Sequence record: OQ411014.1 | Reading direction: 5' to 3' (one strand) | DNA: 64,000 nt | Position numbers and translations under genes: made by a program | Shown here: piece by piece, positions 8,682-26,302 of the stretch | Position numbering within the stretch: position 1 is the first letter of the stretch | How the letters are laid out: each line of letters begins with the position of its first letter | The notes under the pieces: generated by a model | What the model was told of the DNA's origin: nothing | What the model saw: only the letters and a program-made list of their open reading frames with translations | Database searches by the model: none

Positions 8682-8754
8682 GCTTGAATAGCTCAGTAGG
8701 TAGAGCAGCGTACTTGTAATACGAAGGTCGTGGGTTCAATTCCTGCTTCAAGCA
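8682..8754 (+). tRNA. tRNA-Thr(TGT), CCA not encoded
   Basis: Acceptor gcttgaa/ttcaagc, loop ct-tgt-aa, T-loop ttcaat. Confidence 0.92.
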
Positions 8755-10530: not shown

Positions 10531-10968
10531 ATGCAATCGTACTTCTCCATAATTACCGATGTACTCGCAGAATATACCAAACCAGAACAGTGGACACCAA
10601 TCAAATCAGACGTAGGAGAACGCTACCGTTCAGTACTGGATGGTAGTGTCCTGTCCGTATCTAAAGCATTGATTGGTTTCATTTACAATGGAGACAAAGC
10701 ACCAGTCCAGGAATTGACTGTGAACATTTTTGCTAACTCGAAGTATTTTGTATTTGTAGACCGAAATACCAACAAGGTAAGAATAAAGACCAGTGTAGGC
10801 AGTACTGGTATTATGACGAGTAAGGTACTTTCTACTTTAGTTCCAGAAGATGAGTATTTTCATTTGATGTTATCATCTGATGAGTATCAGATATCCTATG
10901 AAGAGCAGAAAATATTGCTCAAGTTCATAGAACTCGCAAAGTGGGTACACAGGAAAAATAATCGTTGA
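10531..10968 (+). CDS. family A protein
   Basis: PEDEYFHLMLSSD. Confidence 0.7.
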   Translation: MQSYFSIITDVLAEYTKPEQWTPIKSDVGERYRSVLDGSVLSVSKALIGFIYNGDKAPVQELTVNIFANSKYFVFVDRNTNKVRIKTSVGSTGIMTSKVLSTLVPEDEYFHLMLSSDEYQISYEEQKILLKFIELAKWVHRKNNR

Positions 10969-16485: not shown

Positions 16486-16576
<91 letters not shown>

Positions 16577-16689: not shown

Positions 16690-16764
16690 CGGGGTATAGC
16701 TTAATGGATAAAGCAGTAACCTTCTAAGTTATTGATCTAAGTTCGATTCTTAGTATCCCGACCA
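16690..16764 (+). tRNA. tRNA-Arg(TCT)
   Basis: cggggta/tatcccg, gtaac-ct-tct-aa-gttat, CCA encoded. Confidence 0.92.
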
Positions 16765-18573: not shown

Positions 18574-19092
18574 ATGAAAGAGCTTATTGAACGTGTAGAT
18601 TTCTTTGAACTGATTGCATTGGAATTTGATCCAGAATGTACTGATATTCTTTCAGATGTACCAATCTTCCCTATTGAAAACGATGATGGTACTTCATCGT
18701 ACTTAGAAGATTACGAAGATTATTTGCGTAGCTTCTGTCCAACATCAAACGATAAAGTGCATCTCTTTACTGAAATTATTCATGTACAATACAATACAAA
18801 TAATAAAGAAATTGTATTATGTGCAATGGATACATTCAACAGTACTGAAGCTGGTATTGCACGTGAGTATGCTAAACTATATCTCATTGATACAGGTGAG
18901 TATTGTAAACTTACCATCAAGGAAAATTCATTTATATTCAATAACAAAGAATATAAGCTAGGTACTACTGAAGAAGAGAACTTCCAGATTTCATGTACTG
19001 ACATGGGTTACTTCAATAATGTAGTAAATGAAGTAAAGAAATTTATTCTTCAAGATATTGACAAGAATGGATTACCTGAGTATAATAAATAA
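18574..19092 (+). CDS. family A protein
   Basis: TTEEENFQISCTD; start at 18574. Confidence 0.7.
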   Translation: MKELIERVDFFELIALEFDPECTDILSDVPIFPIENDDGTSSYLEDYEDYLRSFCPTSNDKVHLFTEIIHVQYNTNNKEIVLCAMDTFNSTEAGIAREYAKLYLIDTGEYCKLTIKENSFIFNNKEYKLGTTEEENFQISCTDMGYFNNVVNEVKKFILQDIDKNGLPEYNK

Positions 19093-19101
19093 CAGAATTA
19101 C

Positions 19102-19191
19102 AGAAGGTTGGCAGAGCGGCTAAATGCACTCGCCTACTAAGCGAGCACTCGCTCCGGCGAGTCGAGGGTTCGAATCCCCCACCTTCTGCCA
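19102..19191 (+). tRNA. tRNA-Ser(ACT), unusual A34 anticodon
   Basis: agaaggt/accttct, ctcgc-ct-act-aa-gcgag, long variable arm actcgc/gcgagt, G73-CCA. Confidence 0.88.
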
Positions 19192-19204: not shown

Positions 19205-19594
19205 ATGATGACAATGCATGTGTACGATGAGTATGAAGAACGTATAAAACATGAAATCCAAAGTTATTTGGATGGTGTCAATAAAAAATTGAAATACAGT
19301 TCGGGTAAACGTTTTCAATCATTCACCCTAGAATACATGGATTGTGATGATTATAAACAACGCAGAATAACTATAAAAATTGCAGTTGATCCGAAGTTTA
19401 GTTGTGTGCATTCATCTTTACAGATAGATTCCACTTTTGGTGAAGATGAAGATCAATACTGGAGTGGTTTTTCCTATATACCAGAAAGTGAAGAAAAGCA
19501 CTTTCAAGAAACGTTACTCAATAAACAGATTTTAAGCTGGGATTTATTGCAGTACTTGATTGTTTTCTTCACTAAAATGCAAAATAAAGATTGA
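19205..19594 (+). CDS. family A protein
   Basis: AGGA RBS at about 19196; SEEKHFQETLL. Confidence 0.7.
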   Translation: MMTMHVYDEYEERIKHEIQSYLDGVNKKLKYSSGKRFQSFTLEYMDCDDYKQRRITIKIAVDPKFSCVHSSLQIDSTFGEDEDQYWSGFSYIPESEEKHFQETLLNKQILSWDLLQYLIVFFTKMQNKD

Positions 19595-20028: not shown

Positions 20029-20238
20029 ATGAAAGCACGAGAACTTGCTAAAATTCTGATGGATAATCCCGAAGCTGAAGTTGTTTTGAATGATAATGAA
20101 TCAAATTATCAATTTTCACATATTGCCTGTACTGAAACTTTTTATAAAGATTCGTATGCTGAATCTTGGCAAAACGATGATAACAAAACTATTTCAGAAA
20201 ATGAAAAATTCAAAGTTGATGTAATAGTTTTGTACTGA
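20029..20238 (+). CDS. family B protein
   Basis: MKARELAKILMDNPEAEVVL. Confidence 0.65.
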   Translation: MKARELAKILMDNPEAEVVLNDNESNYQFSHIACTETFYKDSYAESWQNDDNKTISENEKFKVDVIVLY

Positions 20239-20244
20239 TATAAT
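20216..20244 (+). promoter_or_regulatory. sigma70 promoter TTGATG-17-TATAAT
   Basis: Near consensus, upstream of a non-coding stretch and tRNAs. Confidence 0.65.
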
Positions 20245-20250
20245 GAATTC

Positions 20251-20440
20251 CACAATCAGACGTATATGGTGTAAGTTACGTCGATGTAATCCAGAACAAG
20301 ATCTCTGGTACTCTAGGAAGTGGTGAATGTTAACCTAGACGGGTTTGATAATTGGACGATAGGCAATTATTACTTGACTAGCAGGTTTAAACTAGAGGTG
20401 ACAGTCCTTCACCAAACTGGAAAACCGGATGGACTTTTTA
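20251..20440 (+). ncRNA. candidate ~190 nt structured RNA upstream of tRNA-Ser(GCT)
   Basis: No ORF; several hairpins, possible pseudoknot, ends agtcc/ggact plus T-tract. Confidence 0.45.
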
Positions 20441-20445
20441 ATTTA

Positions 20446-20540
<95 letters not shown>

Positions 20541-20695: not shown

Positions 20696-20769
20696 GGCCC
20701 TTTAGCTCAGTTGGTTAGAGCAGAGAACTCATAATTCTTTGGTCACTGGTTCGAGTCCAGTAGGGGCCA
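20696..20769 (+). tRNA. tRNA-Ile2(CAT, presumably lysidine); Met not excluded; CCA not encoded
   Basis: Acceptor ggccctt/aggggcc and body closely resemble enterobacterial ileX; loop ct-cat-aa. Confidence 0.85.
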
Positions 20770-25417: not shown

Positions 25418-25885
25418 ATGACAGCCCAAACTATAGCAAAGCACTTTCAACAGGAATGTGAAACGTTCAGGACATTTAAAATTGACAACTGGTTAGGTCC
25501 AGATGGTAAGCCAACTGTAGATTTCAATGCTAGTGGTGAAGGAATTACTAATTACTACGCCCCGAACTATAAACCATCTGTAGGTTTAGCACAGACTATA
25601 TACATCGGCAATTATGCAACATCTATTGGTGTAGTTGGTGGTGATGGAACAGGTGATATTGAACTGGATTTGAGTTATTATTACGAAACCAGTACTCTGA
25701 AGATTCACTACAGTTATACTAACGCCAATGACTACGGTCAGATTGAAACGAAAATTAGCGGTACTGAAGAAGATTACTTTCAACAAAGTACAATTCATGA
25801 GAAGCTATTCTCGCTGGAGTTCGAAAAAGAAATGTACGAATTCTTTCAAGAAGTCAAGAAACATTTCGCATATAAATCTAGGTGA
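25418..25885 (+). CDS. family A protein
   Basis: GTEEDYFQQSTIHE. Confidence 0.75.
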   Translation: MTAQTIAKHFQQECETFRTFKIDNWLGPDGKPTVDFNASGEGITNYYAPNYKPSVGLAQTIYIGNYATSIGVVGGDGTGDIELDLSYYYETSTLKIHYSYTNANDYGQIETKISGTEEDYFQQSTIHEKLFSLEFEKEMYEFFQEVKKHFAYKSR

Positions 25886-25888
25886 CAT

Positions 25889-26302
25889 ATGAGTAAGTTA
25901 TTTGAAGAGTTATTAGACATGCTCGTTCAAGGGGCATATGATTTGGGTACGTTCTCTGCTGAAGAACATGCACGGAAATTCCGCTACGGCCTGACTAGTT
26001 CTTCTATGATCGTCGGGACGTACGCAGTGTTTGCACCTGATTCGTCCTTTAGTCTCAAAAGTGAAGCATATACTATTGACAAAGACGTATTGAAACTACC
26101 TAACGGTACTAAGATTCCACACAAAGAGTGCCAAACAGAAGAACAGTACTTCCAATTTAGTTTATTAGAGAATACTCTGGACCTGGAGTACCATGAATAC
26201 GCGTACGTTGTGAAGAAATATAAAACTCTACAATTCACTGCGAATCGCAAGATTTATCATTACAACAATTTATCACATAACAGTTTAGTTGCGAGGTACT
26301 AA
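25889..26302 (+). CDS. family A protein
   Basis: QTEEQYFQFSLLEN. Confidence 0.75.
   Translation: MSKLFEELLDMLVQGAYDLGTFSAEEHARKFRYGLTSSSMIVGTYAVFAPDSSFSLKSEAYTIDKDVLKLPNGTKIPHKECQTEEQYFQFSLLENTLDLEYHEYAYVVKKYKTLQFTANRKIYHYNNLSHNSLVARY

Follow-up and report, generated by a model that had tools for sequence, protein, structure and literature searches.

Escherichia phage EJP2 (OQ411014.1), a 349-kb Asteriusvirus, carries two tRNA genes for the AGY serine box, one with the conventional anticodon GCT and one with ACT. A review calls an adenosine at the first anticodon position (A34) "universally missing" from the Ser-Arg split box and regards it as "prohibited" in phages as well (PMC8007984). The question raised by this locus is whether the second gene, tRNA-Ser(ACT), is a genuine tRNA and, if so, what it would do for the phage. 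Both genes lie in the 64,000-nucleotide stretch of EJP2 DNA analyzed here (the window). The EJP2 genome paper counts six tRNAs genome-wide, so the full phage set falls inside the window (Table 1); three of the six are serine tRNAs, as had been noted in a prior reading of this DNA from its letters alone (the sequence-only reading). The 3 kb of the window that were compared match the GenBank record at 266000 to 269000 with 100% identity, and the record carries a tRNA-Ser feature for the gene there.

Table 1. Coordinates of the tRNA genes, promoter-like sites, and candidate non-coding element in the window
Feature	Position	Strand	Basis or remark
tRNA-Thr(TGT)	8682-8754	+	ARAGORN, Rfam
tRNA-Ser(TGA)	16487-16576	+	ARAGORN, Rfam; D arm nearly identical to that of Ser(ACT)
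tRNA-Arg(TCT)	16690-16764	+	ARAGORN, Rfam; cognate for AGA/AGG, the Arg codons of the split AGN box
Sigma-70 consensus promoter, TTGACA-17 nt-TATAAT	19058-19086	+	12/12 matches
tRNA-Ser(ACT), class II, G73, encoded CCA	19102-19191	+	ARAGORN, Rfam, alignments, covariation count
Promoter-like site	20216-20244		
Unannotated element of ~200 nt	20246-20447	+	Conservation, predicted fold
tRNA-Ser(GCT), conventional AGY decoder	20451-20540	+	ARAGORN, Rfam
CAT-anticodon tRNA, of Met type or perhaps Ile2 type	20696-20769	+	ARAGORN, Rfam

The sequence-only reading had described an intact class II tRNA with G73-CCA and a 7-nt loop CT-ACT-AA, and every one of these details was correct by ARAGORN, by Rfam, and by direct reading. 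ARAGORN, which had been named as a check, confirmed tRNA-Ser with anticodon (act), and the Rfam tRNA model (RF00005, Infernal) matched the gene with 47.9 bits (E value, 3.7e-07; gathering threshold, 29). All six tRNAs of the window score above the threshold of this model, Ser(ACT) being the lowest. Read from the sequence, the acceptor stem (AGAAGGT/ACCTTCT) has 7 bp and is followed by the discriminator G73 and a CCA encoded at 19189 to 19191, and the D stem (GCA/TGC) contains C11:G24. The anticodon stem (CTCGC/GCGAG) closes the loop C-T-ACT-A-A, with the anticodon at 19136 to 19138. Between the anticodon and T arms stands a long variable arm (CTCGC-TCCG-GCGAG) that aligns with that of the host tRNA gene serV, and the T arm (GAGGG-TTCGAAT-CCCCC) has a single mismatch, A50·C64. 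G73 and C11:G24 are identity elements of E. coli seryl-tRNA synthetase (SerRS). The gene thus has the cloverleaf, conserved T loop, D-loop GG, long variable arm, G73, and C11:G24 of a bacterial class II tRNA-Ser. It departs from this type in the anticodon, which is ACU in place of the canonical NGA or GCU, although AGU is a serine codon.

In single-sequence folding, the cloverleaf of the EJP2 gene has a predicted energy of −28.5 kcal/mol and the predicted minimum, at −32.4 kcal/mol, is not a cloverleaf; the non-cloverleaf minimum of one sequence was judged uninformative for a tRNA. The gene also contains an 8-nt direct repeat, GCACTCGC, at 19126 to 19133 and 19145 to 19152 (19 nt apart), and the letters of the variable-arm stem are those of the anticodon stem. 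This repeat, which is lacking in the 121Q type described below, may reflect an internal duplication or chance.

A BLAST search with the 90 nt of EJP2 Ser(ACT) matched 18 other Asteriusvirus records (17 genomes) over positions 2 to 46 at 91%. The gene found there, hereafter the 121Q type, is 100% identical in all 17 genomes. GenBank already notes tRNA-Ser(act) in 121Q (2014) and Sharanji, and ARAGORN also calls Ser(act) in 121Q, JP4, and Sharanji. Alignment of the EJP2 gene with the 121Q type showed the same D stem, an anticodon arm identical at 17 of 17 positions, and double compensatory changes in the acceptor stem (1:72, A:U versus G:C; 7:66, U:A versus G:C), together with replacement of the variable and T arms. 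The 121Q type is without an encoded CCA. Verification of the A34 base in relatives, as had been proposed, therefore gave a clear result: with an identical anticodon arm in 17 independently sequenced Asteriusvirus genomes and 47 more distinct viral Ser(ACT) genes (see below), A34 is no sequencing error.

The genus Asteriusvirus is a patchwork for AGY serine tRNAs. Ser(ACT) is the only one in 121Q, SP27, slurp01, and UB, Ser(GCT) is the only one in PBECO4, Ecwhy_1, and the Salmonella and Klebsiella relatives, and the two occur together in EJP2, JP4, Turkey3, ph0011, and WPEC3. The same slot holds Ser(ACT)-Met-Asn in 121Q and Ser(GCT)-Met-Asn in PBECO4 and, given that the stems of the two serine genes are unrelated, this points to exchangeable cassettes for one job. 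The Ser(GCT) of EJP2 is identical to that of PBECO4, and its acceptor, D, and anticodon stems differ from those of Ser(ACT) in the alignment; it is a separate gene lineage and not a point mutant of Ser(ACT). A BLAST search of EJP2 Ser(ACT) against 5,426 complete E. coli genomes gave zero matches at an E value of ≤0.01, so the gene was not captured recently from the host. Elsewhere in PBECO4, beside Ser(TGA), positions 25839 to 25917 (minus strand) give a weak tRNA-like match at the Rfam threshold (29.3 bits) and no ARAGORN call; the counterpart position in 121Q is annotated as tRNA-Leu(taa).

A further feature of the locus is the unannotated element of ~200 nt that lies just 5′ of tRNA-Ser(GCT), after a promoter-like site (Table 1). 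It is 94 to 98% conserved in Asteriusvirus and RaK2-like phages and 85 to 92% conserved in unrelated T4-like (Bragavirus) and T5-like (Novosibvirus) phages, where it sits exactly between two tRNA genes (Gly-x-Asp and Leu-x-Ser). Copies outside the window are at positions 398 to 598, 400 to 598, 401 to 593, and 400 to 604 of four other phage loci. Its predicted fold includes one hairpin with compensatory changes, and a comparison with Rfam gave zero matches. The element is a candidate for a stable non-coding RNA of phage tRNA clusters.

An exact search of the IMG/VR viral collection with the anticodon arm shared by EJP2 and 121Q returned 121Q itself only, so a structural pattern was needed to reach the wider family. 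A looser pattern found a Leu(CAA)-Ser(ACT)-Arg(TCT) cluster, in which Arg(TCT) directly follows Ser(ACT), on four unrelated viral contigs from metagenomes. The Ser(ACT) genes of these contigs have the acceptor GGAAGGG and the D arm in common with 121Q, and their anticodon stem (CTTGT/ACAAG) carries two compensatory pair changes around an unchanged loop. IMG/VR was then searched with a general class II pattern that specified the D region (TGG..GAG.GG), the loop CTACTAA, and a canonical T loop; since the loop was fixed, variation within it falls outside the scope of this result. The pattern matched 29 plus 65 contigs, and ARAGORN called Ser(act) at 93 of the 94 loci, in 47 distinct sequences. 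The contigs measure between ~6 kb and 519 kb, a few of them being giant-virus bins, and within the stretch fetched Ser(gct) was also present at only 3 of the Ser(ACT) loci. What had at first been taken for a near-unique oddity is instead a recurrent viral tRNA type.

The fold of this family is maintained. In an alignment of 48 distinct Ser(ACT) sequences, covariation was counted over the acceptor, D, anticodon, and T stems. Overall, 98.9% of cells were paired, versus 70.0% in shuffles, and 17 of 20 stem pairs showed changes on both sides. The covariation score was 0.789, versus 0.209 in shuffles and ≤0.161 with partners slid. Because the search pattern fixed the loops and not the stems, this covariation is real evidence of a maintained tRNA fold. 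The median pairwise identity of the viral genes is 0.64, G73 is present in 40 of the 48, and the A50·C64 mismatch of EJP2 is the sole broken T-stem cell in the alignment.

The share of the ACT form could be estimated on one backbone, TTGGCCGAG, which is identical in 13 contigs with the loop CTACTAA and 71 contigs with CTGCTAA, so that ACT makes up ~15% of the viral AGY serine tRNAs on it. In cells the form is far rarer: the GTGG form of the ACT pattern gave 18 matches in 185,579 bacterial and archaeal species (one genome each), compared with 29 in the much smaller viral collection. The cellular matches were mostly from Polynucleobacter, plus contigs of metagenome-assembled genomes (MAGs), including DPANN archaea. 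Several Polynucleobacter species are among them, with a Thr(cgt)-Gly(ccc)-Ser(act) cluster and, in one strain, matches on five contigs. Other cellular genes are in Methylocystis MAG contigs, in a CPR bacterium, and in DPANN MAGs that are AT rich; in one DPANN MAG a Ser(gct) is adjacent.

A search of the viral sample for recent switches between G34 and A34 found no GCT tRNA more than 86% identical to any ACT tRNA, and this sample therefore gives no evidence of repeated point mutation. Nor is Ser(ACT) coupled to Arg(UCU) by presence, which is 28% versus 30% in the comparison set (not significant); Arg(UCU) within 300 nt was seen at 14 of 93 versus 6 of 118 (p = 0.018), a difference on which we do not rely, because redundant contigs had not been removed. 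Elsewhere in these viral contigs, the tRNAs of the remaining NNY two-codon boxes retain G34 (Asn gtt, 23; Asp gtc, 14; Cys gca, 14; Tyr gta, 13). Sporadic A34 tRNAs of two-codon boxes also occur among the ~1,600 viral tRNAs, namely, Phe(aaa) 4 times, His(atg) twice, and Cys(aca) and Asp(atc) once each, and are far rarer than Ser(act).

The EJP2 gene is preceded by a perfect sigma-70 consensus promoter (Table 1), which overlaps the end of the upstream coding sequence (stop codon at 19090 to 19092) and whose −10 hexamer ends 15 nt 5′ of the tRNA. The 121Q-type gene likewise has TTGACT-17-TATAAT ending 9 nt ahead of it. Throughout the window, TTGACA-17-TATAAT occurs 16 times with at most one mismatch, versus 1.28 expected, always on the plus (coding) strand, and seven sites are perfect (examples start at 10965, 19058, 25354, 27934, 37050, 40196, and 41491). 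Given their number and their restriction to one strand, these sites are very likely the early host-polymerase promoters of the phage, and from this promoter-like signal we infer that Ser(ACT) is transcribed.

Codon usage was counted in the 136 ORF-called genes of the window and set against a sample of 15,058 E. coli codons. AGT is the commonest serine codon of the phage (377 occurrences, 20.6 per 1,000, versus 8.4 in the E. coli sample), and AGC is depleted (77 occurrences, 4.2 per 1,000, versus 16.7). Every codon matched by a phage tRNA (AGA, TCA, AGT, and ACA, plus ATA should the CAT tRNA be an Ile2 tRNA) ranks in the top ten for enrichment in the phage, which is the classic picture of codon compensation. 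The presence of Ser(ACT) does not, however, track codon usage among relatives. PBECO4, which has Ser(GCT) and lacks Ser(ACT), shows an equally strong skew (AGT:AGC, 5.3). A comparison, in bins of GC content, of 79 viral contigs that carry ACT with 113 that carry GCT revealed no codon signature specific to ACT: the AGT share of AGY was 0.68 versus 0.71 and tracked GC content in both sets. Since the same skew is seen in relatives that have only GCT and in GCT-carrying contigs, the ACT tRNA leaves no mark of its own on codon usage, and it is clearly dispensable.

The sequence-only reading had also suggested that Ser(ACT) serves AGT codons produced by in-frame AGT-ACT motifs. The palindrome AGTACT is indeed abundant, with 241 copies in the window versus ~22 expected (for instance, at 19551, 19987, 20007, and 20657), mostly as CAGTACTG (86 of 241), and its enrichment is just as strong in 121Q, JP4, Sharanji, and PBECO4. 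It occurs in all three reading frames (82, 48, and 83) as well as between genes, and the in-frame copies supply 82 of the 377 AGT codons (22%). The proposal is thus partly right: the tRNA matches the commonest serine codon, and only a part of the AGT codons comes from the motif. PBECO4 has the motif without the tRNA, and in unrelated viral contigs with Ser(ACT) the skew toward AGT (130:29) occurs with no enrichment of AGTACT, which makes the motif a contributor and not the cause. AGTACT sometimes abuts a promoter −35 element, as in TTGACAGTACTG. Other 6-bp palindromes are wholly absent from the window: AAGCTT (16 expected), CAGCTG (9.2 expected), and CCATGG (7.8 expected), as well as ACCGGT, AGGCCT, and AGCGCT. 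This looks like restriction-site avoidance.

Ser(ACT) is, to judge from these comparisons, real, conserved, and very probably functional. We consider it likely that it is a serine isoacceptor that is transcribed early by the host RNA polymerase, charged by the host SerRS, and used with a mostly or wholly unmodified A34, plain Watson-Crick reading of AGU being the most likely mechanism. Host RNA polymerase would transcribe the gene early from its own consensus promoter, and SerRS would recognize the long variable arm together with acceptor and D features, and not the anticodon. A34, unmodified or mostly so, would pair with the U of AGU, and Ser(ACT) would be a perfectly matched, dedicated reader of the top serine codon of the phage, which the tRNA-Ser(GCU) of the host reads through G·U wobble only. 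AGC would still be read by the host tRNA and, in EJP2, also by the phage Ser(GCU), and for this reason the virus could afford a specialist for one codon. In a cell, one tRNA must cover both AGU and AGC, and the cell would accordingly keep G34.

The serine box would also be the one where such a change costs least in charging. The synthetases for Asn, Asp, Tyr, His, Phe, and Cys read the anticodon and SerRS does not, so that a change of G34 to A is free of charging cost for a serine tRNA. The retention of G34 in the other NNY boxes fits the reading of the anticodon by the synthetases there. Unmodified A34 has been reported to read loosely and would risk the insertion of serine at AGA and AGG. 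These codons are not avoided in the window (152, of which 105 are AGA), and the phage Arg(UCU) would compete for them. With an ACU anticodon engineered into a tRNA, AGU was read in E. coli lysate at higher efficiency than with the GCU variant (PMC6158751).

In a rival reading, A34 is edited. The sequence-only reading had proposed a new substrate of host TadA; after deamination, the anticodon ICU would serve AGU, AGC, and, though weakly, AGA. In the host, A34 is confined to tRNA-Arg(ACG), as had been stated, and in the serV-argVYZQ cluster this tRNA has the loop CTACGAA on the stem CTCGG/CCGAG; the Ser(ACT) loop CUACUAA differs from CUACGAA only at position 36, and both 5-bp stems begin with CUCG. 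In E. coli, a Methanocaldococcus jannaschii tRNA whose loop has one mismatch (CUAUGAA) is partly converted to I34 (PMC5137457), and ~29% of the sites edited by overexpressed TadA are one base off TACG (PMC12255301). This reading is nevertheless not favored and seems to us quite improbable, because the TadA mRNA-editing motif is YUACGAA in a stem-loop, from which Ser(ACT) departs by U36, natural editing reportedly requires UACG, and changing one base of the 7-base motif leaves little or no editing (PMC12255301). Some changes at position 35 or 36 prevented the deamination of stem-loop substrates, according to work cited in PMC5137457. ICU would moreover place serine at AGA, used 105 times in the window, and Ser(ACT) is also found in contigs of giant-virus and archaeal type, the hosts of which have other deaminases or none. 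The sole annotated deaminase-fold protein of EJP2 is a dCMP deaminase that is also present in relatives without Ser(ACT). A wider departure from the dedicated reading of AGU carries a somewhat larger, still small, chance: a fraction of ICU, or loose reading of AGA and AGG, would lead in infected E. coli to a low, tolerated or exploited substitution of serine for arginine, or A34 would let the tRNA survive a G34-dependent host nuclease, and Ser(ACT) would form a virus-specific isoacceptor class that breaks the A34 rule.

Survival of a nuclease could by itself be the function, with the A34 tRNA replacing a host tRNA-Ser(GCU) that is cut by a host anticodon nuclease requiring G34; the anticodon loops of Ser(ACT) and host serV differ only at position 34. 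Phage tRNAs that escape nucleases through anticodon-loop changes are documented (PMC10264068; PMC12445682), as the sequence-only reading had noted, and the phage Thr(UGU) corresponds to a known nuclease target (PMC12445682). EJP2 also encodes, outside the window, a tRNA repair kit of RNA ligase, 3′-phosphatase/5′-polynucleotide kinase, and tRNA nucleotidyltransferase, the CCA-adding enzyme (PMC10213699, supplementary table), which makes attack on tRNAs a relevant pressure. For Ser(ACT) itself, resistance to a tRNase found no support: the E. coli nuclease targets named in the literature checked are Lys, Tyr, Thr(UGU), and others (PMC10264068; PMC12445682), and no E. coli nuclease against tRNA-Ser(GCU) is named there. 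Normal Ser(GCU) is kept alongside in EJP2, JP4, and others and stands alone in many relatives, and an A34 tRNA could not fully replace it, since AGC would be left poorly read. We hold this explanation to be as improbable as TadA editing. Least probable of all, in our view, is a neutral or decaying paralogue of little function in EJP2, conserved through the recent common ancestry of close genomes. The T-stem A·C mismatch, the lowest score of the six tRNAs, and a predicted minimum fold other than the cloverleaf would fit decay, as would the dispensability of Ser(ACT) within the genus and the finding of the identical 121Q type in genomes that are nearly identical overall. Yet the acceptor stem has changed in a compensatory manner between EJP2 and 121Q while the anticodon arm has not, a perfect consensus promoter precedes the gene, and the cloverleaf is kept, with covariation, in 47 further distinct viral sequences. 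The score itself is close to that of the 121Q version (49.9 bits) and of the metagenomic version (52.8 bits).

A candidate for a phage-encoded TadA was also considered and rejected. Sharanji has been reported to carry a "tRNA-specific adenosine deaminase" (PMC11895373), and the same label (tadA) is found in slurp01. By sequence, this protein is a dCMP deaminase. Its orthologue in EJP2, gene 116 (OQ411014.1, 59803 to 60258, outside the window), is 71% identical to the Sharanji protein, matches the dCMP deaminase Cd of T4 (1vq2) with an E value of 2e-29 versus 6e-4 for TadA (1z3a), and scores 27.9 bits against the NCBIfam TadA model, for which the cutoff is 150. The tadA label in both phages is probably an automatic misannotation, and no phage-encoded TadA is evident among the annotated proteins of EJP2.

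As a likely dedicated reader of AGU, Ser(ACT) bears on the rule that excludes A34 from split boxes. A literature search for phage Ser(ACU) or Ser(ACT) found no paper discussing such a tRNA, and the EJP2, Sharanji, and fEgEco12 papers list tRNAs without anticodons. Ser(ACT) is thus annotated in GenBank and not discussed in the literature searched, and it is a widespread, virus-enriched class of serine tRNA with a "forbidden" anticodon. Contrary to PMC8007984, Ser(ACU) is common in viral contigs (about 1 in 6 or 7 AGY serine tRNAs on one shared backbone) and very rare in cells. This suggests that the "prohibition" of A34 stems from the need for one tRNA to read both AGU and AGC and not from chemical impossibility, and that viruses, leaning on the host tRNA, are free to add a specialist for a single codon. 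Among NNY two-codon boxes, the anticodon is ignored by the synthetase in the split AGN box alone, which would explain where the exception is located. The cultured E. coli phages EJP2, 121Q, and Sharanji offer a natural in vivo system in which the modification, the codons read, and the accuracy of an A34 tRNA in a split box can be followed.

Compared with E. coli tRNA-Ser(GCU) (serV) and the phage Ser(GCU), Ser(ACT) is likewise a class II serine tRNA of the AGY box, with G73, C11:G24, a loop of the form C32-U33...A37-A38, and an anticodon ending in CU. It differs in having A34 and not G34, so that AGU is matched by Watson-Crick pairing and AGC poorly, and in its acceptor, D, and anticodon stems. 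With E. coli tRNA-Arg(ACG) it shares A34, the loop CUAC-AA, and a 5-bp stem starting with CUCG; unlike that tRNA, it has U36, which breaks the UACG core, and it is of class II and serine identity and serves a split box in which inosine would misread AGA. Mycoplasma Thr(AGU) and yeast mitochondrial Arg(ACG) tRNAs have an unmodified A34 and serve unsplit four-codon boxes, where loose reading is harmless. The A34 of Ser(ACT) is presumed to be unmodified as well, but in the split Ser/Arg AGN box. An ACU anticodon has also been engineered into tRNAs for the reassignment of AGU in E. coli lysate, and thus in the translation system that the phage uses; these tRNAs are synthetic, orthogonal, and "non-native," and AGA and AGG were removed from their templates as a precaution against misreading (PMC6158751), whereas the phage anticodon is natural and conserved and coexists with many AGA and AGG codons. 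Like the tRNAs of T4, T5, and mycobacteriophages, Ser(ACT) belongs to a small set that is carried by a lytic phage for codons poorly read by the host and is clustered among small early genes (PMC10264068); those known cases have canonical anticodons, and Ser(ACT) does not.
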